Positions 7,060 through 31,861 of a stretch of DNA of 35,997 bases are shown here, piece after piece (positions within the stretch are counted from its first letter, which is position 1; each line of letters opens with the position of its first letter). The DNA lies in assembly GCA_965644295.1 (NCBI GenBank), contig CBFFRP010000447.1:1-35997 (forward strand), written 5' to 3'. The position numbers and the translations under genes were made by a program. Under the pieces are notes generated by a model, which made no database searches, was not told where the DNA came from, and worked only from the letters and a program-made list of their open reading frames with translations. The stretch comes from Paraphysomonas bandaiensis. Its lineage: Eukaryota > Protista > Chrysophyceae.

Positions 7060-7605
7060 CGGTACTGTAGGTCACAAGAACAGCAAGACAATGTGGTGCG
7101 TTTATAGTAAACGGACTTTCTATTCTGTTCCAGCTCAATGCAGAAGTAGACGACAAGCTCGCTATGGGAGTGACCGTATGACTCTGTACAGCTTCTTCTA
7201 TACGTGTACGTACAGTATATAGAGTGTATTTTTAAACCTTGAGATTTTTTTGTATATTGAGATGGAGAATATAGAAACGAAGAATCTTGAGCGGACATTC
7301 AAAAAATTTAGTTTCCATTACTGTATGTATTGTACCTGATTATAATAACCGTAAACGGATCACTGTCCGGGAATGACGCTTTCCGTTTTTGTCCAGTTTT
7401 TGGATCCAGCATACGACACTTCAGACTTGTGCACATTGCCGCCATATCTAGTTGTAGTATCCTGGTGTCGCTGTGTGTGAAGGGGAGATGCATACTTACC
7501 ATCGAAAGATTCTGATCCTCTGCAGAGATTGAAGATGAAACTGTAAGTTCATTCGTCTATATAGTAACGCAGAGTGGTTGCCTTTTAATACACGGAAGTT
7601 GAAGA

Positions 7606-10600
7606 ATGGCACGAGGAAAGAAAAAAAACACGTTGAAGTCTGAGGAAGATGAAGAAAAACACGCAGACAGTCGCGATCGTCATGGGAAAAAAATACACAG
7701 ACAGAATGCTGAACAGAATCAGGCAGCAAGAGCGCCGCCACCCCCTCAACGGAGACCGCAATCACATCCAACCAACAGACAGACAGATCAACGTGTACAC
7801 ACGTCACTCAACCAGTCGGGTCCTCAGCCTGCTTCATTGAAAAATAGACAAAAATTTAAAGCCAATGAACAGAGAAGCTACAGAAAGGGAGATAGCGGCA
7901 AGTCCGATCGCTCACTGCCCGCAGCTGCTCGGAGAGACGGGAATAAAACCCGCCCGGGAAGATCGAGTATGTCTTCTGCTCTCAATAATTTTTCTCAACT
8001 TCTGCAGCGTTGTGTAGCGAAGGGAATATTCTTCGCTGATAACTCAACCAATTTAGCACTTTGGCAGAATGCGTTCAATTTGATTGCAGACGAAGAGTTT
8101 AATGATATGAAATTTACAAGAAATGTGCTGAGGATGTATTTATATCTTCCTGATAATGACGCGTATGCTATCAATGCAGAAATTGTATTGAGGGTACTCA
8201 CTAATATCTTGAGGTTTTCCGACACTGCAGACATCACACTAATCTCAGATATTATTGAGCAGCGCGTCTACCGACGCGGCTCACCCAGAAAAGTTGGTAA
8301 CAAGAGCACCGTGAAAGGGCTGATTGAAAAACTGATAAAAAGTAATGAGAAAAGTGTAAGAAATGCGCCAAGCTCGGAATTGATGGAAAGGATTTCCCTT
8401 TTCCAGAAAATCAAAACAGACCTCGAGAATTATCTCAATGCTATATACCAGATCGTCAATGATGAACCAATCCAAGGAGAAAGTAGCAACGTATCAATCT
8501 CTCATCATTTGAAGTGGGCCACTTTACCGACAATTGGATGGCTCTCTGATGGACACCTAATTTCGAAACTGGTCTCTCTGAGGCCTTCATATGACTCCTC
8601 TGATCAGTATGTGGAGACTCTTCGTGCCATGTGGACAATGCTCACCTTTTATTGGGGAACAGCAGCACTCTGGCCTCGTTGCTTATCAAAATGTGGAGGG
8701 GAGGACGAGAAGGGGATATGTGGTAAACCATTACTGTTTCCAGTAGCATCTCTCACGAGAAGCAACGGTACATGTAAAAAAGTGATAAAGAGAAGTGGAT
8801 CAAATGAAGTGAAAGTGTGTGGAGCTCAGGCACAGTGGCGTTGCCGGATGCGAGGACACGATGAAATTTGTGGAACGTGTTTGGACCTATATAAAGCAGC
8901 TGCATTAGGTCCGAAGGGAAAACCTGAAGCAAGCACAGATATTTATGACGGAATAGTAACAGATATATCGCTTCGACTAGACAGTTCAATAGTCAACATA
9001 GCTGAGGTTTCCTCTCGCAAACCGCCGATGGAGCGTAGTTCTGATGGACGCTCACAATTACGCGAAAGGCCAATTTCCTGGCGAACAAGCTATCGTCTGC
9101 AGCCATCCTCACTCGTTGCAGTTGTGCCCATGGGGATGACCAACCAATCGTTGTCGAGTAATATGCCTATATTCTGGGGTGAACTTGTGCCACACCATTC
9201 TGTCTCGAAGGAAAGCCATAGAAGTCAAGACGAATACAGTCGTCGTGAAAGGGGGCATATCTCCGTGCGCATTCTGTCGCGATCTGATTGCACTGACCTT
9301 CCCAACCATACATGCTTGCCGTTCTATCAAAGATCACCAGTGGTAGTAATAGACTTAAAAGTTTTTGTGCCAGAAGTGATGTCGGTTCTTGCAACACTGT
9401 CTCATTCTAGTTTCGCGGAGGGGTTAGAAAGTGTTTCTTTCAAACGATTACTGCTCGGGCAAAGCGATAGAAATGATATGGAGCGTTGTGATAAGCAGAA
9501 CAAGGCTCAGGATATTGCGCTTTCTGATCTTCTCTCGAACGTTTTAGAAAGTAGTAATGTGTCCTGCATAGCTGACATGACACCAAGCGATCGCAAAGAG
9601 GTATTAGAAGAAATACTCGATCTGCCTGTTGTGAGTAGCTTGGATCATGCTCAACGGATCGCGTTTGCAAATGGCTTGATGAAATCTTTGCACTGCACTC
9701 AGGGGCCTCCAGGGACTGGAAAATCTTATGTGGGTGTATGTCTTGTCCTTGCACTGATCATCATTCGCAAGAAAGTACGAAGGACTGGCCGGAATATCGG
9801 CCCCATTGTAGCTTTATCTTTTAAAAACCACGCCCTTGATGAGTTTTTGGTGGACATATTGCATTGTAATCCTGAATTGAAAAAGCATAGACAACTTGTT
9901 CGTCTCGGTAAGCCTGAGAATGAGGAGCTTCAAGCATGTACCGAACAGCGTTCTGTACGTGAAAAGGTTGCTCAGCAAAGAGTTGTAGAATGTCTTGAGG
10001 TAATTCGAGAAGGCCGACGCTATGTGCACAAATGGTTTTCACAATCTGATATTTTAAGTGGTTTCTGCATGGAAAGCGTAGTAGAGTGTGCTACTACACT
10101 CTTTCAGATTAAAAATGATGAGACATATGCGGGCGACATAACTGCGGAAAAAGGCTTCCGTTTACTGAAGTCTCTCTTGCGTACAATCAGTAAAGACGAT
10201 CCGGATTTTCCCTGGAAGTCATTGACTGATGATGCTGTGCACTGGAAGGATTGCAAGATCGACAATCTGGATCGCAGTCTGTCCTTGTTGCAGCATTGGT
10301 TGCAAGGGGATGAGCCCCCTCCCCGCTGTGCCGCAAAAGTCGGAATGAGTACATGTACCGAGGCTGCTGTTTCCAAAAAGAAATTTTGTGAGAGTGCACA
10401 TGATTGTAAGGTTCCCTCGTGCATGGAAATAAGAAGCCTTAATTCTGACTGCTATTGTGATACACACCGTTGTGAGACAGCGCATGTTCGTTGCAACGAG
10501 CGCCGTGTTGAATGTTTGAAAAGTCGTTTCTGTCCTCATCATAGCTGCGTCCTCTGCAATACAGTTGAGATTTTGTCTCCTGGTGCTAAAACATGCCAAA

Positions 10601-13600
10601 GGCACACATGTACTGTTACCGATTGTGAGCGGCCTCAAATTGTTTCTTTTCTGTTTTGCAAAGTTCACTGTTGTGAGGTGTGCTTGAAGCTTGACAGTGT
10701 TAGTGGCTCATCTCGCACAGTTCAACCTTCTAACTTCTGCGAACGACATAAATGCAATGCATCAGGATGTCACAATATGAGATATGATCAAATGAAATAC
10801 TGTTTGAAACATACCTGTGAATATTGCACAGAATTTGTTTCGAAAGAAGGATCTCGCGTATGTCAATCTCATCAATGCAATTATCACGAAGAAGATTGCC
10901 ATGATGCAGTAGTTTGCTCCAGTGATGGACGATTGTCATCATTTTGTGCCACACATACATGCCGATTCTGTGTGCTAGATATGGATACAAATTTGACTCG
11001 TGATGTTTATGCACCGTGGTTTACGTGTGCGCATCATCCTGTTTGCCAGGGTGTCTCAGAAAATGGAGAAGCGTGTCGGCAAGTACTGTCTGACAAGGGT
11101 GCAATGTGGTGTGTAAAGCATGACCCTGATAAAACCACTTGCTGTGGTATAACAACGAAAGGAAAACTATGCAAGACCGCAAAACCTAATGATGTAGCGG
11201 GAATGTGGTATTGTGAAGCTCATGCTTCTCAAGCTGATTATGATGAACCGCCTCCAGTCAAAGATTCAGTAAATGATTCTAATATGGCCGCACAGGCAGT
11301 GCTGATGGAAATACCAAAGCAGGTGCATGCTGGTGAGCCACTCATACCGCTTGGGAATTCCTTCGCTGTTCGTAAATGTCTAATTGAAAAATGCGATATA
11401 TTAGTTGCAGCTTTAGATGCCTCGGAAAGAGATACAATCCAATGTCCATATCATGCTGCAATGGCAGCTTTCACATGTGAAGTGGAGGTTACAAAAGAAG
11501 AGTACATATTGGATGCACTTGTACACGATAAGGCCACCGTGAAAGGTATGTGCGTGGTGATAATTCTCCTAACAAAGTAATATGATAAAATTGTTTATGT
11601 ACCGAAGCAGCATCGAATGCAGAAGGAAAAGAAGTGACTACGTCAGCAACAGTTGGGGACTACCAATTTGTGCATAATATTGCTGGAGAGGAATTTTTGG
11701 ACGAACCAATGGTGGCTGAAAATATGGATGAAGTAGAATATGTCGATGATGAAGATATCTACAGCGATGAAAATAGTTCAGGTGTGGATGAAGTGGTTAG
11801 TGAGAATCAAAAGCACCTGCGCGATATTTATTGTGAAGATGAAGAAGAAGATGATGGCATCATCTGTGAAATTAATTCAAAGCTATTTCATGTAGAAGTA
11901 GAAGATAAAGATCTCTCTCATGAAATGCTACAGACCTTATATGAGAATAGTACGGGTTGGAATTGGCATATGTGTATCACCACAAGACAGAGAGAGGTAT
12001 ATATGTTCATAGTGCGAGTTTCGGAATGGATGAGAAGGCTTTGTGAGAAGGCGGAAGAGTATGTAGATGAGGTGAGGTTGCGAAGAGAAGAGGCTGCGAG
12101 TCATGCTCTCAAATCTGCAGTCATTGTCGGGGGGACAATTGTTGGTGCTGCGAAGCGCTTAGTGGCCCTCCGTGCAGCTGAGCCCTTTGCGATTATTGTG
12201 GAAGAAGCATGTGAGGTCATGGAGCCGACTTTGGTTGCTGTCCTTGCAGTGAAATCGGTAATGAAGTTGGAACTCATTGGGGACCATCGTCAACTACCTG
12301 CTGTTATTAACAATTGTTGGTATGACTTGGAAATATCGAAACCATCAAATAATATCAATATTTCTCTCTTCCAGCGGCTGATAGAAGGACATGATGGTAT
12401 ATGCACGGTCTTAGAGGAACAACGTCGCATGCGCAGATGTATATCAAATCTTACTAAGTCTCACTATTCAGACCTCGTCGACATCATTGATAGCGACTGT
12501 ACTTTCAGGCAAAAGGTTGGGGATAGGGTTCTTTGCAGAGAATCGCGAAAGAAAATACAGGCAAGGTGGGAAGATCGTGGTAGATCTATTCCCGGTATGA
12601 AATCCTGTATATATTTCTGGGATATGGTGGGTAACACCGAGTCCAAGCGAAAGGTTGGCCTATCCGCCTGCAACGAGAATGAAGCTTCAGCGATCGTGGA
12701 ACTGGTGAAGTTTCTTTTGCTCTGTGGCGTTCCTCCATCTACCATCACTATAATTACTCCATATCAAGGGCAAAAGCGCATTCTTGTTAAAATGTTCAGA
12801 GCCGAGAAATGTTTGCCAAAAGACTTTAACATGTCTGCATCCTCCTTCATATCCACAGTGGATAGGTATCAGGGGGACGAAAATGATATTGTTATTTTAT
12901 CTCTTGTGCGAGCAAAGAGTGGAAATAGATTTATTGCTCTCAAGAATCGTTTCATCGTTGCTACCTCTCGAGCTCGACTTGGATTTTATGTGGTAGGATC
13001 TGTTGGCGCTGTTATGCAATCTCAGAGTACTCCTCATTCTCGAAATATGCCAACTCATTGGTCGGAGTTTGTAGAACACCTGCAGCAAAATGATAGGAGT
13101 GGATGCGACAACTTCAGTGGGAGTAGATGTGGCCCGGAGTTGCCAGTTTGCTGCCCTATGCATCGTTGTAGCACTTTACTTATCTCGTCGAAATCGGTAT
13201 CGAGAAAGTTTCCCTCCATTGATAATTGGAATACTCTCTGTTCTGAACCATGCCGTGTACGCCTACAATGTGGACACGACTGCCCTTCTACATGCCATTT
13301 TCTCTCTCCTGATGATCATGGACAATGTATAGAAGTAATTAAGCGGCCATGTGAGCGTCACAGTGAAGTTCCTCTTCCATGCAAAGAATTTGGACACTCA
13401 CCAAATTTATGGAAATGCGAAATACTTGTTGTTTATAAGTTCGAAAAGTGTAGCCACAACTTAAAGTTGAAATGCCACGAGGTCACTGAGATTGAGCATG
13501 GTAAGTGTCCTCCTCGCTGTGAAGTAGTTGTCAGCGATTTTATTATTTCATCATGCGGACATAAGATTGTAAAACCGAAATGCTATGAGCGGCAACAATA

Positions 13601-16600
13601 CGAAATCAATCCACCCCATTGCAATACTGTGATAAAGGTTCAACTCCACTGTGGTGATCATACAACTGAGTTACCATGCTCCGAGGCTGCCAAGGAGTTG
13701 TCTTCCCCAACACAGTGTCTTGAAATGACCAATAGCATACGCCCGCGATGCTTGCACCCAATATCTTTGCGTTGTTTTGAGAAAACTCATTTGAAGAAAT
13801 TGTGGGAAGAATCATCTGGGTGTGCTGCAATACAAAACACAATTCGCAATGAAACTACTACTGTCGTAATGGAAGGTGTGCATTATGGACAAGGCGAGGA
13901 TCAACTCTTGCCTTCAATAAACGTCAAGCGTTGTACTAGACCTGTACGTTTCCAGCGTAAATGTGGGCATATTATAACTAGAGTTCCTTGCGCTGAAGCA
14001 TTTGACTATGCGAATGGGGTAAAATCATTACAAGAGTGCACTGAAAAAGTAGAAGACTTTTGTCCCATCTGTCGAAGCCAGATACGCATCCCCTGTTGCA
14101 AAATCGAGTGTGTAAAAAAGTGGAGGTGGCAAAGTCTGTTTGACTTTGTTGAGGGTTCAGTAGTTGCTCAGGAGTCTCGAGTAAAGCATGTTATGCTTTC
14201 CGCTGAAGACAAAGAGATATGCGACATTCTGAAAAGGTGCAAATGCATTGGTGAGATAACGCTCGCTCGACAGTGTCACCCCAGCCATCGCATGAGGTTT
14301 AATTGCTACGCCCTCTTACAAGTTATCCTAGATCCTACCATGTTAAAACCATGTGAGGAAGTCGTATTACGACAGCTGAGGTGTGGACATGAGGCTAGTG
14401 TGCCCTGCAACAAACCCGATCCAGAGTGTCATCAGAAACCGGAAGAGTTATATATGTTTAAAAGTTGCAAACATCGTATCGAACTGCAGACATGCAGCCA
14501 GTTACAGAGTTATCGTAATGGCTCAGTACGAGTTGAGTGTAAAGAACTTTTGAGGCATCGTCTATACCGCTGTGGACATAATGTGACTATTCCATGCCAT
14601 CTGGCCCAAACACTGAAGCAGCCAACCGTGGGCCTTACTTTAGGTAACAGAGTTACGGATGCAACAGCAGTCGTAGAGGTAGGGATCCCTTACTGCAATC
14701 GATGTTCCGATGTAGTATGTGAAGCCAAAGTATCTCTTCTGCTGAAGTGTGGCCATGAGTTGGCCAATATAGACTGTGATAGTGCATTTGCTTATGCGCG
14801 AGGCGATGCTGAACCACCATTATGCAGAAAAGTGGTGTCATGGAAGAGTCCCATATGTGGGCACGATGTTAGCATTCATTGTTGTAATGTTGATACCGTA
14901 AAAGATTGGAGACCCTGGATAGAAGGGATGCCACGAGTTATCAGTAATACTTTTTCTTATCCGTTACCACCTCTGGACATGTCAAAGCGTCATGGCGATT
15001 ATTTTTCATGTGATGCTGAGGTTACTGTACTGTTTGAGGAGTGTCAGCACAGTCATGTTTATCTCTGCTCAACTCTATTTGAGAAACCGCAAGGCTTGCA
15101 GTGTACAGAGGAAGTTATTTTCCAATGCATTCGAGGTTGCGGAGCTGATATAAAAATGCCTTGCTATAGGCATCGACAACTTACAAAGGAACAGTTGATG
15201 GAAGTCTGCGACAATACTATCACTGCTACGTGTCAAGAATGTGGAATCAATGACGTCGATGTTCGCTGCAGTAATCAGCATTATGTTGAGTGTAAAAGAA
15301 CTGTTTCGTGTACTTTGTCATGCCAACATCAGGTCTCATGGCACTGTGGAAATGACATTGACCCTAGGAAAGGAGAAACTGGAGGTTCACCACCTTCGTT
15401 GAACGACCTGTGTCCTCATTGTGTGCGTGATGCATGGGCTTATGAAACGAATAGTATAGTGTTAGATCAAACAACTTTACATGACGTAGCCCGAGAAATG
15501 ATAATAGAGAATATTGAGGGTGGCGAAAAAGCTATAGTTTCAGAAGAAAATATTTCTATTCCCAAATTTTCTGAACTGCAAAAAGTTCGCGGTAAAATTA
15601 TTTTGAAGTTACTGGAGGCGATGGAAAACCAGAACTGTGATAGGTTCTTGCCTCCCGAACCTTACACCACCTGTATTTCTCAGTACATTCGAAAAAATTT
15701 CGATATCGTGTTTTTAGAGGTTCCTTATGACCGTAAACCTGATGCTACAACAGTTTGTCGCCGTTTCAACACCTCGAACACAGTATATGGGCAAGGGGTG
15801 GAAGCCCACCTTTTTCAAAAGGAATTAATTCACAACCTCGCTACATCCCATGGTCGAGTGAAATTATGTGTGGGGCTTGCCTACTCTAAGAGAATGCTAT
15901 GTAATGAACTGCCATGGGTAATCGGTAATGGAAGCGAAAACGTTCGCAAGCGAGCCAATAAAATGATGCATGAAAGTAGGAAAAAGGGATATGATTGCGT
16001 GGAAGTAAATACCGCTGATGGTAAAACGCTGAGCAAAAGAGTGTACTGGGAACCGGGAGCAATTATTCCGATATCTATATTGGAGTTACAACTTCATACT
16101 TCCTGTCCAGTGTGTTGGAATTATTACGCTCGCGACAGTTTGAACGGGGCAATATGCTCCGAGGGACACTTTCTTTGTTGGGACTGTTTTGGAGAGTACT
16201 TACAAAGTGCGAAAAACGACGATGCAATCAAATCCTACGTGGATTCAACTTGCAAGCTATGCTGCCCTGAATGTAATAAAGGGTATGATGTTATCCATCT
16301 TATATCGAACGAATCTCCGAAGCATATGTGCAACCAGCTCTTGGAAGTACAGCGAGAAATAGAGCTACGAAAACACGAAAGTACTGTTTTACAAGAAGCA
16401 CGCGAGGTATATGATATATTTGTGTACAGCAATGCTGTGTTGACTGTCAATGGTGTAATAGGCTTATGATAAACAACTACGCGAGGAGATTAAGCGTATT
16501 GAAGAAATGAATGAACTTGATCGTCAGGTTCACATTCTTCGTCGGATAATTGAGGAAGATATTTTAACTCAAAAGTGTCCCCGATGCAAGCAAGCATTTG

Positions 16601-16899
16601 ATACTTTTGACGGTTGCTTTGCTTTGACTTGTTTGCGAAATAATTGCGGTGCAAGTTTTTGTGCGTGGTGTCTTAAGGATTGTGGGCATGATGCACACCG
16701 ACATGTGGCCCACTGCAAGTATGGACATGGCGACGTCTTTGGAAGTATTGAAGAACTTAATAAAGTTCGAAAGCGGCGCGCCCGTCGGAAAATTCTGGAT
16801 TTGGTGATGCAAAAACCCAAGCAAGTAAAGAAAAAACTTCAGGAATTGATGAAAGTTGTATTTGATGAGGATCTGGACAAACTTCGGATCGACGAATGA
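7606..16899 (+). CDS. ZNFX1-like UPF1-family SF1 helicase with NF-X1-like zinc fingers, PARP-like domain, RING1 and Rcat; exons 7606-11545, 11611-16406, 16462-16899 (~3057 aa)
   Basis: Introns GTATGT..GCAG (65 nt) and GTATAT..ATAG (55 nt) join the three large ORFs in frame. Motifs: ISWRTSYRLQPSSLV (ZNFX1-type), QGPPGTGKS, SFKNHALDEFL, LVRLG, IIVEEACEV, IGDHRQLPA, SLFQRL, LEEQRRM, ITPYQGQ, STVDRYQGDENDIVILSLVR, NRFIVATSRAR. These are followed by many C-x(n)-CGH-x3-C repeats and C-terminal zinc-binding domains. Confidence 0.88.
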
Positions 16900-18683
16900 A
16901 CTACAAGTAGCCTACATCATGCTTTTCTTTGCACAATTATTCAATTTGCACCTGTACATGAGTTGTCGTACACAGCTCTGTGTTTGCAAGAGATATGTAG
17001 TATATTGCACAAGATCTCATACGAACACCAATAGGGGAAGGTGATATCCTTGTTCTATCCTCTACGCATTTTTAATATATAGTAGTAGTACAATGATAAA
17101 GTTGAATATGATGTGATAAATCAAAGGAAAATATTTCACAAATAGAAATGTTGCAAGGCGTTTAGTAAAGCTTATGTGATAGGAAAATATTAATATTTCA
17201 ACGTATACCAACTCAACTATCCTTAAATTTACTAGCAGAATTTACTTAGGTTTGCTACTTGCTCACCCACTGCAGATTATTGGCTGAGTGTATAGAATGA
17301 GAAATTTTGGTTGTACAATCTTATCTTCATTGAACACTACCACTTGAATATGAATATAGTAGTCAATCACGACTCCTAAATTCTTATCGTGTTGTCATTG
17401 AACACGCTATATTTGTTGAACATACAGCTGTCATACGTCATACTTGGTGTCTTATCTGATAAAATGTTACATCTGTGCTTTCTCGATAAACCACTTACAG
17501 TGTCAAATAGTGATGGTACCCTATATCCTAAGATAACAGACAACGTTGTGTGTAGTGGAAGCAATAGTGCATAAGCATGGAGGATTGGTCACAGTCGTCA
17601 AAATCTGACTCAATGGGTCTCATTCTAATAATTCTCAGTAAACTAATCTCTTCCAACCTTATCTATACAAGCCATACCCTGCTCATTTGACACTCTTCAG
17701 AAGGCAGAACCAGCGGCACATGGAGCATGCAATGCGTTGATGTCATTACAATTGATGACATCTAACAGGACACTACAAACCCATTCGGGAGCTCTGTAGT
17801 AGTCGATACGAATGGTGTGAAGTAGTGCCAGACACCATGCTCCTTGTGCATGAAGTATTACAACTAACACCGGATGCAACGCGAACATGGGTATTTAAGC
17901 CTCCTCAGTGAGTGAAGAGATATTGATAGTTGTATCTCCTCCTCCATGTGTACAGGTGATATATATATGATAGGGAATAGTGCAAAAGCCTTTTTATAAC
18001 ACTTGACACTTAATGCAACTTATTATTATTATTGCAGCTCTCTAAACTCTGCTATATCTAAAAATCCATATCCTGTCCCTATTTTCTCATAGCTAATTCT
18101 AGAAGCGGTTTCCCAACCACAAATAGTAGTCATATAGAAATCAGAAATCCCTTAACTTTCTACCACCTTGTCCTATATCATCCTACAGAATACCACCATA
18201 ATACCGTACGCGTTATATTAAAGTCCATTATGTCCGGATAGTCATCCCAACCCTATATTTAGCATATCTTCTGATCTCATCATAACTACCATCTATGTCT
18301 CATCTAATATTACAACCTGCACTACTTCATCCTTCTCCTTATACCAAGCTAGCTTCCAAAATCACCCACACTCATCATACCCAATTTTGCTACAAAAGCT
18401 TTCACATTGGGTTAGCAAGACAATATATTGATGTTGATTTCTTTATGGATTATATAGTGAATGGCGTAGTTCTTAATACACTCATAGCAGAAATAAATAC
18501 CGTACGCATAGCTAAACGACGTCCGACACGTAATCGAATAGACAGCTGAGCTTCTCCAACGGCTTTGTCCCCGCCACCACTAAATCCAGACAGTCAGGTA
18601 TCAAAATATTCTGCGTCAATCCAAAGAACAGGGAGAACTGGTCTTTATCGCCAGCATGCAGTATGCATAACAAAATAGCGACG

Positions 18684-20538
<1,855 letters not shown>

Positions 20539-20688
20539 GTCGGGCTCGGCTTAATTGGACGAGTAGCTTATGATGAATATGAAGATGCATGCAGACAACT
20601 CAAGAGCATAAACAACACTGCCGATGAACCTTCCTACATAATACATAAGGAGCAGCACCACTGGAAGTACTATACGACTGTACGTACG

Positions 20689-21337
20689 TACATACATACC
20701 TACATGCATACATACATACATACATACATACATACATACATACATACATACATACATACATACATACATACATACATACATACATACATACATACATACA
20801 TACATACATACATACATACATACATACATACATACATACATACATACATACATACATACATACATACATACATACATACATACATACATACATACATACA
20901 TACATACATACATACATACATACATACATACATACATACATACATACAATACATACATACATACATACATACATACATACATACATACATACATACATAC
21001 ATACATACATACATACATACATACATACATACATACATACATACATACATACATACATACATACATACATACATACATACATACATACATACATACATAC
21101 ATACATACATACATACATACATACATACATACATACATACATACATACATACATACATACATACATACATACATACATACATACATACATACATACATAC
21201 ATACATACATACATACATACATACATACATACATACATACATACATACATACATACATACATACATACATACATACATACATACATACATACATACATAC
21301 ATACATACATACATACATACATACATACATACATACA

Positions 21338-21368
<31 letters not shown>

Positions 21369-21439
21369 CATAAATACATACATACATACATACATACATA
21401 CATACATACATACATACATACATAAATACATACATACAT
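20689..21439. repeat. (TACA)n microsatellite, ~750 bp
   Basis: Near-perfect tetranucleotide run with a few 1-nt slips. Confidence 0.98.
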
Positions 21440-21526
21440 GCATGATTCGTCAGTTGGGTTCTGTATGTTGATGGAATGGAACATCGTGTAGGTGGTATTT
21501 AAGTGAGATTAATCACATCTATTAAA

Positions 21527-24500
21527 ATGCCCCATGAGTGGAGGGCTCTCGTCAGTGCCGTCAGTCGGCATATGCCCGCATTGTTTACGAGGCTACTGGA
21601 GGTTGTGGACATCGTGTTCGGACCCAAACAGGTACATCCTTAAGGAAATATACGTACACTCAGAAACACTAACCGCTATGTGTATGTTATAGTTATATAC
21701 ATGGTTATGTGTATGTTATAGTTATATATGGTTATGTGTATGTTATAGTTATATATATGGTTATGTGTATGTTATAGTTATATACATGGTTATGTGTATG
21801 TTATAGTTATATATGGTTATGTGTATGTTATAGTTATATATATGGTTATGTGTATGTTATAGTTATATATATGGTTATGTGTATGTTATAGTTATATATA
21901 TGGTTATGTGTATGTTATAGTTATATATATGGTTATGTGTATGTTATAGTTATATATATGGTTATGTGTATGTTATAGTTATATATATGGTTATGTGTAT
22001 GTTATAGTTATATATATGGTTATGTGTATGTTATAGTTATATATATGGTTATGTGTATGTTATAGTTATATATATGGTTATGTGTATGTTATAGTTATAT
22101 ATATGGTTATGTGTATGTTATAGTTATATATATGGTTATGTGTATGTTATAGTTATATATATGGTTATGTGTATGTTATAGTTATATATATGGTTATGTG
22201 TATGTTATAGTTATATATATGGTTATGTGTATGTTATAGTTATATATATGGTTATGTGTATGTTATAGTTATATATGTGGTTATGTGTATGTTATAGTTA
22301 TATATATGGTTATGTGTATGTTATAGTTATATATGGTTATGTGTATGTTATAGTTATATATATGGTTATGTGTATGTTATAGTTATATATATGGTTATGT
22401 GTATGTTATAGTTATATATATGGTTATGTGTATGTTATAGTTATATATATGGTTATGTGTATGTTATAGTTATATATATGGTTATGTGTATGTTATAGTT
22501 ATATATATGGTTATGTGTATGTTATAGTTATATATATGGTTATGTGTATGTTATAGTTATATATATGGTTATGTGTATGTTATAGTTATATATATGGTTA
22601 TGTGTATGTTATAGTTATATATATGGTTATGTGTATGTTATAGTTATATATATGGTTATGTGTATGTTATAGTTATATATATGGTTATGTGTATGTTATA
22701 GTTATATATATGGTTATGTGTATGTTCTAGTTATATATATGGTTATGTGTATGTTATAGTTATATATATGGTTATGTGTATGTTATAGTTATATATATGG
22801 TTATGTGTATGTTATAGTTATATATATGGTGATGTGTATGTTATAGTTATATATATGGTTATGTGTATGTTATAGTTATATATATGGTTATGTGTATGTT
22901 ATAGTTATATACATGGTTATGTGTATGTTCTAGTTATATATATGGTTATGTGTATGTTATAGTTATATATATGGTTATGTGTATGTTATAGTTATATATA
23001 TGGTTATGTGTATGTTATAGTTATATATATGGTTATGTGTATGTTATAGTTATATATATGGTTATGTGTATGTTGTAGCTATCATTGTTTTTTTGGTGCG
23101 TGTTTTAGTTTTATTCTTGTGTGACTGTATCTTGTGTATTTTAGTTATGGGGATGTTATGGTTATGTGTATTTTTGATCCGAATGTACGGAGTAACATGT
23201 TTTAGTTGTGTGTGCGTTATAGCTTTATATATATTATTGTTGAATATATTTTTGTTGCATGAAAGTTATGGTTATGTGTATATTATTGGATTTAGCTATA
23301 TTTACTGTGTGTGTAAAGTTTATTAGAATAGTGTTTTATTTATGGTTATTTACATGTATACAGGTGGTGAAACACGTTTTGCTTGCGGCAACTGCTCAGT
23401 GTATTATAGTTGGAGTACACCGTTTAAGCATGGGGATTGATTTTGCGTGGAGTCTTGTGCACCGTAAAAGTGCAGAGAAAAGAGCTCTCACATGGCGAAT
23501 GCAACAGGCGACTGACTTTTTTGCATGGCGTCGTATAGCTGAAGAACTGGACGATATGCTAGGGAACACGGAGTGGATTGAAGAGGATTCGTCACCTCTA
23601 TATGACTGGCGGGTTCTGTCGAGACGAGCAGCACAGATCCAGCACATGCTGTACAGTCGTGATACATTTGGACTCATGTTCCGACTCAGAGGGGCCATTA
23701 GCAGGGATCAGTACGGTATGCAGAATCATGGTTTATTTTCTCGTGCACTCAGCGGTACCAAACGACTGATACAGCAGTATCATGATTACGTAACCACAGC
23801 GTTGCAATTTATTGCCGATAAAGATCCTGATTCTGAGGTGAAACTGACAACAGTTACTGGAAATTTCATCATTGAATTGATTATTAGGTGCCCACTGATG
23901 CGAAGTTGGCATTTTTTAATGAAACCAGGCATTGCTATGGCCGGACAGCTCTACTTCTTTCTGGGGGTGCGTATCTGGGATTTTACCATATAGGCATTGT
24001 TAAGGAATTGCACGACCGGGGATTGTTACCCCGTGTTATATCGGGAGCAAGTGCTGGGAGTCTCATCGCGGCTGCTGTGGGGTACGGACGTGCATGTGTG
24101 CCGGAGTGTAGATTTTACTATTATTAGCCGTTTTTTCAACATCGCTGCCATGCACACATGTATATAGACGTGCGTTGTAGTGTGGTAATATATAGGATTG
24201 GCAACTTGTTTGTGGAAAATATGAATTATTGCCCACTGACCAGTGTTACATAATTTTATCTATGACAACTGGATTTGCGTAATGTCTGCTGTAGGGTCAG
24301 AAATGATGAAGAGCTCGATGCCCTCAATGAATACACTATTCCTCGCTTGGACCACTTTTTACATGACTGGGAGATTCCTGGTCCTTCCGCAAAGTGGTTA
24401 AGTAGGCGATATTTGGAACGAATTATACCAGAAAAGTATCACTACCTCGTCTCCTTTTTTTTTGGCGTACTTGTGGACAGAAGATCATTTATTAAACTTG

Positions 24501-28475: not shown

Positions 28476-30040
28476 TTATAGATCTTCTTCGCCTTCGGGA
28501 TCATTCTCGCTGGAAATTTCTGTATCACTTCTGTGATCCTCATCGCCACCCAACAGGCCCAGTAGAAAAATATCATCCCCATCTACTTCATTTTGATTTC
28601 CTTCCTCTTGCTCTTCTTGTGGATGAGCGGAGAGTTGAATCAATCTTCTCCGAAATATCATACAGAGTGCCATGGCGTGATCCCTTTCACGCTCGACCTC
28701 CGCTAGTATTCCTTCTAGACGTCTGCACCAGCGTACAATATATGAGTACTCAGAAGTGACAACACGAGAATAAAAACCAAGCACGTTACGCATAAGGCAA
28801 TTCACTAAGTGAATGTTGTTTCTGTGTGGGAAAAATAACGCACCGTCTAGATTGTCGCTCTCTACGAAGTTGCCTCCGAAGATTGTCCACTTCATTCACG
28901 GGCCCATCGAACCAGTGTCGTGTACAATAGGAGAGTATGAGATGCCAGATTTCCACGGGGACCCTACTACAGACTCCACCTGCTTTGAGGGACGACATAT
29001 GTAATGCAACAATAGCCTCTTTGAATGATACTGGGATAATAGACTGACAGGCTCGACTTGGGTTCCACACGAATGACTTAAGTATGACTAAAGCAAATAA
29101 GTTTAGAGTTTGTGACAGGCATATTCAGTACTTGATATATGCAGAACACGCATTAATTATATATTGTATAAAATTGTACTCAAACAGCGGTTCTGTGATA
29201 TATTCAAGTATACACCACGCAAGAGTTCGTTACAGAACCTGTTTTATCATCATCCTGAGGTTGAACAAGAGGCGCAAAAGATACCATAGAAATAACCTCT
29301 CTCTGAATCAAACGCTCCCCTTCTTCAGTATCAACGTCTGACTTTTTCAACCGCATCATATTCATTCCAAATGGACCGACCAAGACCCCACCCGGAGAAA
29401 GAAGAGAGAGAAAGTATTCTTCGTGATGGACCATGGAACCAGCCCCCACATATATTCTATCATAATGGATATTAGTATCAGAGTCTATGGATAATCCGTT
29501 TCCACAGAAAAAAAAAGTGTGAGATGAGGCTCCCGGAAGGCAATTTCTATATCGTTGCTCTGCATGTTCTCGTAACTCATCATGAATATCAACACCATGG
29601 CTCACACCCAAGACACCTCTTGATAGAAGGATAGAATCCACCAGAGCCTGCATGTACCCCGTTCCTGACCCTACGTTCAAAAAAGAAAGTGCCTTCCCTG
29701 GAGGCGAGTCGAGGAGATCAAGATAACGCAAAGCAGAGGCGTATATATCAGGAGCACTCTGTTACACGAATGAATATCAGCAAGCAGCTACCAGCATCAG
29801 CCAATGAGCTCAAAGAGACTCGGACAGGGCTGATAGTGGGACTCCTACCTGATGGAAGATGCCGGATCTGACCGGGCGGATGACGTATGCCTCTTCAGCC
29901 ATGTGAGAGGGCAGGAATGAGGCTCTGTCCACTGAGAGGAAAGCGGAGAGGATGCGGGGGTCGAGGTGGCCGGACTCCCTCATGCGATCGACCATATGGA
30001 GGTTGCTGTTGGCAGTCTCTTCGATATCCATCGCAATCAT
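28476..30040 (-). CDS. Protein-L-isoaspartate O-methyltransferase (PCMT)-domain protein with C-terminal F-box/SOCS-like motif, coiled coil and acidic tail; exons ~30040-29849, 29758-29239, 29087-28844, 28722-28476
   Basis: NLHMVDRM..AFLSVDRASFLP..AY..P..HQSAPDIYA, SAM motif SFLNVGSGTGY, YDRIYVGAG, LSPGGVLVGP, VSFAPLV; then VPVEIWHLILSYC. The start codon (30040 or 30031) is uncertain. Confidence 0.85.
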
Positions 30041-30733: not shown

Positions 30734-31861
30734 ATGGAGGAAATGATGCAGATGGGAGGGTACGTTAACTCATCCACGCTCCCGTGTATGTCTCTTCAAG
30801 ATACCCTCTGGAAAAATCTTCATTCTAGTCCTGAGGAATTGTCCCCTACTGACGTAAGTGCACAATGTTCAGACGATGGCGAGAGCGGATATAATGAGAG
30901 TGCATCTGCCTCATACTCCAGTAGATTATCCCCATTACTCTCTTCATCTCCTCAGCCGCTTATGGTCCCTCGCACTCAGCTGGGGTGCATTGTGGAGGTT
31001 CGATTCAAGTGCACCAAAGATAACTATAAGATCACGGACCAGATTCATGGTGAAATTAAAATTGGCGATTCAGTTGTTGTGGAAGCGGATCGTGGGTTTG
31101 ATGCTGGTGTGGTTCATGACATTCGCCCTCCGGCTCCTGTATCGATATATGCCCCTTCTCAACATTCCCCTTTGAGGCGTGTTGTGTCATTGGCTTCTAT
31201 TGAGGATAAACAGCTTATGCAGGCTAATGCAAAAGAAGAAGAAAGAGCACTACAGCTATGCAGACATCTCGCTCAGGTTCGCCACATACCCATCACTGTG
31301 GCTGCTGCAGAGATGCAATTTGACCGCAAGAAGCTCACCATCATATTTTCCTCCGATAGGAGAGTCGACTTTAGGGAGCTGGTGAGAGACATGTTTCAGG
31401 CATTCAAAACGCGAATATGGATGCAAAAGGTATCTCCTTCTGAAGCAACCACTTTGGCATTCATGTTCCCCACCGCCCCTCTTGCACCCGCTGCGGTGCC
31501 TCTGCGAATTCAAAATGCTCCTCGTAGTTCCAGACAGGTTTATACTCCACCAGCTCCGTCTGTAGTGGACGGTCAAATGCCTAACGCTATTCCTTATGTT
31601 CCTACCACGGCTTTGAAATCCTCAGATAGTTTTCGAACTGGGAAACCACCAACCCCAATAGTCACCGGATACTCGATAGACATCCATTCGGCTCCCGCTG
31701 AGGTGCAAAACTGGCATGCTCAAGGAGATGTGTATCAAGTACGAGATCCGGTTACTACTCCTGGAGGGTCTGCTTCATCTCTTCGGGTGGATTCTGCCTA
31801 TTTTTATCCCTCCACCAATTACTTGAGTCATCAAGCTATGCCACAGCACTACGAATTCTAA
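30734..31861 (+). CDS. PSP1 C-terminal domain protein (PSP1/YaaT-RicT family), intronless
   Basis: VEVRFK, IKIGDSVVVEADRGFDAGVV, EMQFDRKKLTIIFSSDRRVDFRELVRDMFQAFKTRIWM, flanked by low-complexity Ser/Pro regions. Confidence 0.9.
   Translation: MEEMMQMGGYVNSSTLPCMSLQDTLWKNLHSSPEELSPTDVSAQCSDDGESGYNESASASYSSRLSPLLSSSPQPLMVPRTQLGCIVEVRFKCTKDNYKITDQIHGEIKIGDSVVVEADRGFDAGVVHDIRPPAPVSIYAPSQHSPLRRVVSLASIEDKQLMQANAKEEERALQLCRHLAQVRHIPITVAAAEMQFDRKKLTIIFSSDRRVDFRELVRDMFQAFKTRIWMQKVSPSEATTLAFMFPTAPLAPAAVPLRIQNAPRSSRQVYTPPAPSVVDGQMPNAIPYVPTTALKSSDSFRTGKPPTPIVTGYSIDIHSAPAEVQNWHAQGDVYQVRDPVTTPGGSASSLRVDSAYFYPSTNYLSHQAMPQHYEF

Follow-up and report, generated by a model that had tools for sequence, protein, structure and literature searches.

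Human ZNFX1 was recently shown to be an RNA-activated helicase in which an acidic plug helix within insertion 1C blocks the RNA groove until RNA binds, and in which two C-terminal fingers work much like the relay of RING-between-RING (RBR) ubiquitin ligases; it has a rigid stalk, and an E2-binding domain relays to a Cys finger (bioRxiv 10.1101/2025.10.14.682297). We analysed 35,997 nt of DNA from Paraphysomonas bandaiensis (contig CBFFRP010000447.1), hereafter the window, the positions of which serve as coordinates, and found in it a three-exon gene (7606..16899, plus strand, as are all features described for it) which encodes a protein related to ZNFX1. We consider it likely that this protein represents a deep and widespread sister clade of ZNFX1, in which a nucleic-acid-dependent superfamily 1 (SF1) helicase is linked by a stalk to a Cys-relay ubiquitin ligase. 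We think it best to regard the protein as a variant of the ZNFX1 design at the level of a paralogue, with a ubiquitin ligase (E3) made from genuine RBR parts but lacking the IBR domain.

The resemblance to ZNFX1 (PDB 9q9z) extends over an Upf1-like SF1 core with an EE-type Walker B motif, a region ahead of Walker A that is probably of 1B type, an acidic element within a 1C insertion of very large size, an NFX1-type stalk directly after lobe 2 and a two-part C-terminal E3 in which helices lie between an E2-binding finger and a Cys-bearing finger. The protein differs from ZNFX1 in that the helicase tree places it in a clade of its own (the cores share approximately 29% identity), its insertion 1C bears about 12 zinc knuckles, its stalk is about three times longer and it ends in a pseudo-PARP domain, a true RING1 and an Rcat domain rather than in Miz-like and RZ fingers.

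One expressed gene of three exons

An earlier note on this DNA had proposed that three open reading frames (ORFs; 7606..11580, 11634..16469 and 16507..16899 in the ORF list of the window) are spliced into one protein, and the transcript evidence confirms that they form one expressed gene encoding a single chain of ~3057 amino acids. Exon 1 (7606..11545; 1313 codons and 1 base) runs from the basic N-terminus through an N-terminal domain and helicase lobe 1, where Walker A lies, into insertion 1C, of which it encodes the greater part. Exon 2 (11611..16406; 1598 codons) takes up insertion 1C at its acidic end and goes on to the helicase core, the NFX1-type zinc stalk, the PARP-like domain and RING1, ending early in a helical linker, while exon 3 (16462..16899; 145 codons and the stop) contains the rest of this linker, Rcat and the C-terminal helices. 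The two GT..AG introns, of 65 nt (11546..11610) and 55 nt (16407..16461), both preserve the frame, giving a product of 1313 + 1 split codon + 1598 + 145 = 3057 aa. A stop codon lies in frame directly upstream of the ATG at 7606.

Transcript contig X1 (9358 nt) is continuous to the end of exon 1 (11543/11545) and has exactly 65 and 55 nt spliced out at the two predicted sites. It extends from ~7485 (or from farther 5' should a 5' intron exist) to ~16962 and thus covers the reading frame in full. Marine polyA metatranscriptomes also contain the transcript, and two of them provided contigs (X4 and X8) from which the 55-nt intron was again spliced out; both introns were retained in a DNA-like contig, X17. 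The exon 2/3 junction also occurs exactly as predicted in a database protein, P0001 (481 aa, 98% identical), through which this junction was studied, the exons otherwise being searched separately.

We also noted a candidate 5' mini-exon, starting with an ATG at 7535 and followed by a GT..AG intron (7543-7604), which would add Met-Lys-Leu in frame before position 7606. The reads of four public runs were aligned to positions 11200-16950. Over these 5.7 kb, contigs X1 and X17 differ from the window at ~26-27 positions, and the metatranscriptome contigs have partly different sets of differences from the window, which suggests that strains or alleles vary in the sea.

Helicase motor, insertion 1C and zinc stalk

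By sequence comparison the motor and the zinc stalk are homologous to those of ZNFX1, and the 1B-like region probably is as well. The Walker A motif GPPGTGKS (9703-9726) and motif II, VEEACE (12198-12215), could be read directly, and the other helicase motifs GDHRQLP, YQGDEND and ATSRAR are intact. The Walker B of human ZNFX1, EEAA, is of the same deviant EE type (bioRxiv 10.1101/2025.10.14.682297). Human ZNFX1 was the closest PDB match of both helicase halves (9q9z; phmmer E = 2.5e-37 and 5.7e-10), with aquarius and UPF1 weaker at ~1e-17, so the suggestion that this is a ZNFX1-type SF1 motor was borne out. The Pfam family AAA_11 matched in two parts, profile positions 2-134 to residues 679-808 of exon 1 and 146-254 to residues 103-232 of exon 2, and AAA_12 matched residues 249-463 of exon 2; the remainder of lobe 1, with lobe 2, makes up the core at 11913..13052. 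A region like the ZNFX1 domain (helicase 1B) runs through Walker A at 8947..9765, as judged from hhalign and AAA_11: the N-terminal family profile aligned with the canonical ZNFX1 domain plus Walker A at a probability of 96.9% (E = 1.6e-10). The Pfam model of the ZNFX1 domain, PF25396, gave no match on exon 1, and Pfam found no family in the N-terminus, the 1C insert or the zinc stalk when these were searched singly.

The zinc-finger stalk (13053..15452) comprises ~800 aa after lobe 2, among them 76 Cys and 39 His, and contains 15 C-x(1-2)-H-x(n)-C knuckles. When taken as a family profile, its first 340 residues aligned with the NFX1-type fingers of canonical ZNFX1 over 207 columns (hhalign probability 99.0%, E = 2.8e-18), in agreement with the NF-X1-like chain that had been proposed to follow the helicase; the ZNFX1-homologous part is the first third of the stalk. 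Pfam zf-NF-X1 gave no match on the stalk and phmmer of the stalk alone against the PDB returned nothing meaningful, with the relation to ZNFX1 being visible only in the profile-profile comparison.

The two AAA_11 halves are separated by ~600 residues, corresponding to helicase insertion 1C. The split of AAA_11 between the exons therefore places a first Cys/His-rich block and an acidic stretch inside the helicase. The domain order given in the earlier note is confirmed but for this point: the two elements belong to insertion 1C, and it is the main zinc chain that follows AAA_12. The Cys/His-rich block is a zinc-knuckle array (10327..11223) of ~12 tandem C-x(8-18)-C-x2-H-x-C units, a feature that the earlier note had missed, and its Cys and His residues are invariant or nearly so in the family alignment of 41 sequences. 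An AlphaFold2 model of the array had a pLDDT (predicted local distance difference test) of 88.9, and no solved counterpart was found for it among PDB folds (Foldseek E > 0.7, VIA Z ≤ 2.2), which does not prove the fold to be new. At its acidic end (11685..11912) insertion 1C has 30 D/E against 4 K/R in 76 aa, and this stretch is a candidate counterpart of the acidic plug of ZNFX1; by analogy, we infer that it may be autoinhibitory in the same way.

The chain begins with a basic, low-complexity N-terminus (7606..8010; 31 K/R against 13 D/E in 135 aa), and the N-terminal domain contains a cluster of 7 Cys and 1 His (8680..8880) at invariant or nearly invariant columns of the family alignment. 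Some relatives have N-terminal CCCH (C3H1) RNA-binding zinc fingers at the place of this basic N-terminus, namely P0011, P0051 (Chondrus), P0160 (Agarophyton) and P0162.

The putative C-terminal ligase module and PARP-like domain

The tail was modelled by folding P0001 with 67 homologous tails (mean pLDDT 93.6). In this model a C3HC4-type RING1, the second loop of which is long (16104..16274; P0001 residues 236-292), is followed by two long helices in place of an IBR domain (16275..16575, the DNA being interrupted by intron 2; P0001 308-351 and 354-370), by an Rcat or RING2 domain (16576..16716; P0001 375-421) and by C-terminal helices (16717..16896; P0001 432-472). Only one Cys lies between RING1 and Rcat in P0001, so there is no IBR Cys cluster. 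Parkin was the best PDB entry for the family profile of the RING1-Rcat part, with RING1 and RING2 matching their respective fingers; the stretch matching parkin RING1 had an E value of 4e-4 and the whole chain, with RING2, 3.2e-6. VIA found the RING1 domains of parkin, HHARI and RNF144 at Z ~5, and the RING1 Cys and His residues are invariant or nearly so in the family alignment. A phmmer alignment with RING2 of parkin and HHARI placed the Cys within GCFALTC (codon 16615-16617) opposite their active-site Cys. This candidate catalytic Cys is invariant in 68 of 68 sequences, including a kinase fusion and a helicase fusion from Salpingoeca which are described below. The RING, coiled coil and Rcat without IBR that the earlier note had read from the letters are thereby supported.

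The module resembles the RBR ligases parkin, HHARI/ARIH1 and RNF216 in its RING1 and Rcat profiles and its active-site Cys, and RNF216 also in having a helix before Rcat. It is unlike them in having two long helices for the IBR, in having Ala in place of the His two residues after the catalytic Cys and in being attached to a helicase. Against the Miz and RZ tail of ZNFX1 the hhalign probability was 0.65%, in keeping with the view that the two E3 modules differ, and this gene contains no RZ finger (PF20173). We had also considered homology of the tail to the Miz/RZ fingers of ZNFX1 and rejected it on the same hhalign probability. Taken together, the comparisons support the reading of the tail as a putative transthiolating (Cys-relay) module which differs from that of ZNFX1 but is carried on the same chassis.

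Several points weigh against this reading of the protein. The Pfam IBR_2 match on Rcat scored 23.4 bits, under the cut-off of 27, and Pfam RING matches fell far under their curated cut-offs; the structural Z scores of RING1 and Rcat were only ~5-6, which is flagged as a common level; and there is no IBR, with the His near the catalytic Cys replaced by Ala throughout the family. Outside the tail, the plug role of the acidic stretch is drawn by analogy alone, and the immune role considered below is an extrapolation from animals. It should be noted that, because Rcat is without the His and there is no IBR, an RBR-type relay is unproven. The tail could instead be a plain RING ligase or a structural or ubiquitin-binding scaffold in which Rcat is a zinc-binding remnant. 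The missing IBR, the Ala in place of the catalytic His and the low IBR_2 score would fit such a tail, as would the observation that human ZNFX1 can also act in a one-step, RING-like manner in vitro (bioRxiv 10.1101/2025.10.14.682297). However, parkin and HHARI do not use their active-site Cys for zinc binding, yet the residue aligned with it does not vary in the family, and we regard a non-transthiolating tail as unlikely.

Directly before RING1 lies a domain with the fold of PARPs and other ADP-ribosyltransferases (ARTs) (15462..16100; P0001 residues 22-234), which was recognised by fold searches. VIA matched it at Z 10.3 to 9.2 over 154-166 residues to RCD1, SRO1, PARP15, PARP1, PARP10, TASOR and PARP13, and Foldseek also found the PARP fold (E ~1e-4). 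Structure searches thus supported the degenerate PARP-like domain that had been suggested, and RING1 and Rcat at lower Z. None of 54 family members matched PF00644, and the family profile of this domain, when compared with PDB sequences, gave only a spurious match to a designed binder, the fold being visible by structure alone. The domain is similar in this respect to plant RCD1 and SRO1, TASOR and PARP13/ZAP, in which the ART fold is likewise seen by structure only and the triad is degenerate; it differs from them in having no sequence-level similarity and in its position before RING1.

The columns in which the NAD-binding His and Tyr are expected are variable among the 54 members and never have a majority of His or Tyr. 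At the positions of the His-Tyr-Glu (H-Y-E) triad the window protein has Leu, Glu and Lys, in a low-confidence mapping which was based on a weak hhalign alignment (probability 19%) to the true PARP domain of protein P0233 and on motif reading. We therefore read the domain as a probable pseudo-PARP, with low confidence in the residue mapping. Were it instead an active ADP-ribosyltransferase, it would couple ADP-ribosylation to ubiquitylation as in DTX3L/PARP9 or Deltex-type systems. The clear fold match, the Glu or Asp found at the catalytic-Glu position in 23 of the 54 members and the existence of ZNFX1-domain helicases with a true Pfam PARP domain (P0232 and P0233) are in favour of activity. 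The absence of PF00644 matches and the variable His and Tyr positions argue against it, within the limits of the weak residue mapping, as does the presence of the known inactive RCD1, SRO1, TASOR and PARP13 among the top fold matches; an active enzyme seems to us very improbable. P0232 and P0233 are metagenome proteins in which the Pfam PARP catalytic domain is C-terminal (E = 3.8e-34 in P0233), which means that ZNFX1-like motors acquired PARP-type domains either long ago or on more than one occasion.

Distribution, cassette reuse and possible roles

An exhaustive search with the PARP-like and RING piece found 129 representatives at 50% identity. A first search with the tail had given no match among proteins of 879-2796 aa, which, in view of these 129 relatives, reflects the limits of the word and length filters used. 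After mapping nine pieces of the window protein on the matches, we found the same complete order in dozens of proteins of 2,400-3,400 aa. Members of the family occur in chrysophytes (Ochromonas/Chlorochromonas, Spumella and Dinobryon), brown algae (Ectocarpus), pelagophytes (Chrysophaeum), red algae (Chondrus, Gracilaria and Agarophyton), alveolates (Chromera), Rhizaria (Paulinella), Telonemia (Telonema) and Amoebozoa (Thecamoeba). The architecture was thus not invented in this lineage but is conserved in at least six major eukaryotic lineages, and the claim of the earlier note that this lineage had independently coupled the modules is not supported.

In a helicase-core tree (quick maximum likelihood, midpoint root only) the family formed its own clade on a long branch (SH-aLRT, the Shimodaira-Hasegawa-like approximate likelihood ratio test, 99), apart from the canonical ZNFX1/RZ clade, from the ZNFX1-domain helicases with a true PARP domain and from kinetoplastid helicases. 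The nearest named relatives of the window protein within the family are from chrysophytes. Members have generic database names such as hypothetical protein, RING-type domain-containing protein or DNA2/NAM7 helicase, and the precomputed Pfam families PF26600 and PF26601 (apparently Pfam 38) cover part of the family. We found no published description of the family in a literature coverage that was incomplete, so this is not proof of novelty.

We also considered whether the gene could be a recent, lineage-specific fusion or separate genes joined by an error of assembly or annotation. The architecture was not recognised by the earlier note and many of the database entries are fragments, as might be expected in that case. 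However, transcript contigs from several studies cross the junctions and all nine pieces stand in the same order in dozens of proteins from distant taxa. This explanation is refuted by the spanning contigs and the conserved architecture, and we give it next to no weight.

The helicase family is single-copy in this genome, which also has a canonical ZNFX1-type gene with PF25396, AAA_11, AAA_12 and NFX1 fingers (L022, contig C362:128408-132690, minus strand). No RZ finger was seen at that locus, where the gene is followed on the same strand by an ORF encoding ankyrin repeats and an AAA ATPase. RZ fingers (PF20173, above cut-off) were found at C186:24843-24968 and C219:178131-178324, loci without similarity to the helicase described here.

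The helices and Rcat segment was found at no fewer than nine other loci of the genome. A 983-aa ORF on the minus strand (C263:321157-324105; L012:358-3306) encodes a protein kinase followed by RING, helices and Rcat, and has five more copies which are 80-83% identical and one divergent copy (27%), the ORFs being of ~1000 aa. These kinase-cassette ORFs are also on C138, C618 (two copies, head to head), C453, C461 and C409. In Salpingoeca rosetta, PTSG_05285 (P0163, 1817 aa) is a ZNFX1-domain helicase which ends in the same cassette; it has neither the long stalk nor the PARP fold and groups with canonical ZNFX1 in the tree, a placement that is unsure because of its long branch. The kinase fusions and PTSG_05285 share with the window protein the RING-helices-Rcat arrangement and a GC[FL]AL[TY]C active-site motif, but have other N-terminal heads and no PARP-like domain. 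The RING-helix-Rcat cassette is thus modular, and is reused on kinases and on the Salpingoeca helicase. The earlier note had missed its reuse on kinases.

By the mechanism that we propose, RNA entering the helicase groove would displace the acidic part of insertion 1C, as in the plug of human ZNFX1, and the long zinc stalk would act as a rigid link from helicase to ligase. RING1 would recruit the E2~Ub conjugate, the Rcat Cys would take over the ubiquitin, and its final acceptor would be the protein itself, ribonucleoprotein (RNP) partners or RNA, with the pseudo-PARP probably serving as a binding or regulatory domain and not as an enzyme.

The role might be in defence against viruses or transposons, or in silencing linked to small RNAs. 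The innate-immune sensor-effector role suggested by the earlier note would follow by analogy with animal ZNFX1, and a role in small-RNA or transposon silencing is equally open. The same molecule may thus act in small-RNA amplification or in heterochromatin and transposon silencing rather than as a virus-sensing effector, which we regard as a real possibility, if a less than even one. Relatives of ZNFX1 act in RNA interference in fungi and nematodes (bioRxiv 10.1101/2025.10.14.682297), there are parallels with Hrr1 of S. pombe, SAD-3 of Neurospora and ZNFX-1 of C. elegans, and a single copy that is conserved across very distant lineages fits a housekeeping role in silencing better than a gene in an arms race. 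Against this, the presence of the E3 cassette on an expanded kinase family of the genome looks more like signalling or defence.

A broader reading, which we put forward as doubtful, is that the cassette is an ancient and distinct class of IBR-less Cys-relay E3, in which an RNA-activated ZNFX1-like motor and a pseudo-PARP gate would direct the ubiquitylation of RNA or RNPs in a eukaryote-wide antiviral or anti-transposon system, with animals having swapped to Miz and RZ fingers. As part of this joint claim, and to be held just as guardedly, the pseudo-PARP would be a reader of ADP-ribose, of NAD-derived signals or of nucleic acid.

In the reading which we prefer, that of a ZNFX1-like helicase with a stalk-linked Cys-relay ligase, the family would be a parallel solution on the ZNFX1 chassis, in which a genuine RING1, an Rcat and a PARP fold are joined to a homologous helicase and stalk, and which coexists with canonical ZNFX1 in one genome. 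It would offer a natural comparison for the coupling of helicase activity to ubiquitin transfer, a minimal RBR without IBR for mechanistic work and, for algae and protists of ecological importance, from which hardly any such systems are known, a candidate factor for nucleic-acid surveillance.

Three neighbouring ORFs of the window have no apparent link to the helicase gene; they encode proteins with DUF3336 (23259-23990, plus strand), PCMT (isoaspartate methyltransferase; 29207-29731, minus strand) and PSP1 C-terminal (30734-31858, plus strand) domains. Between these and the helicase gene are a (TACA) microsatellite of ~190 copies (20681-21443) and a 29-bp minisatellite of ~49 copies with a 98% match (21677-23082), which account for the low G+C content and extreme GC skew there.

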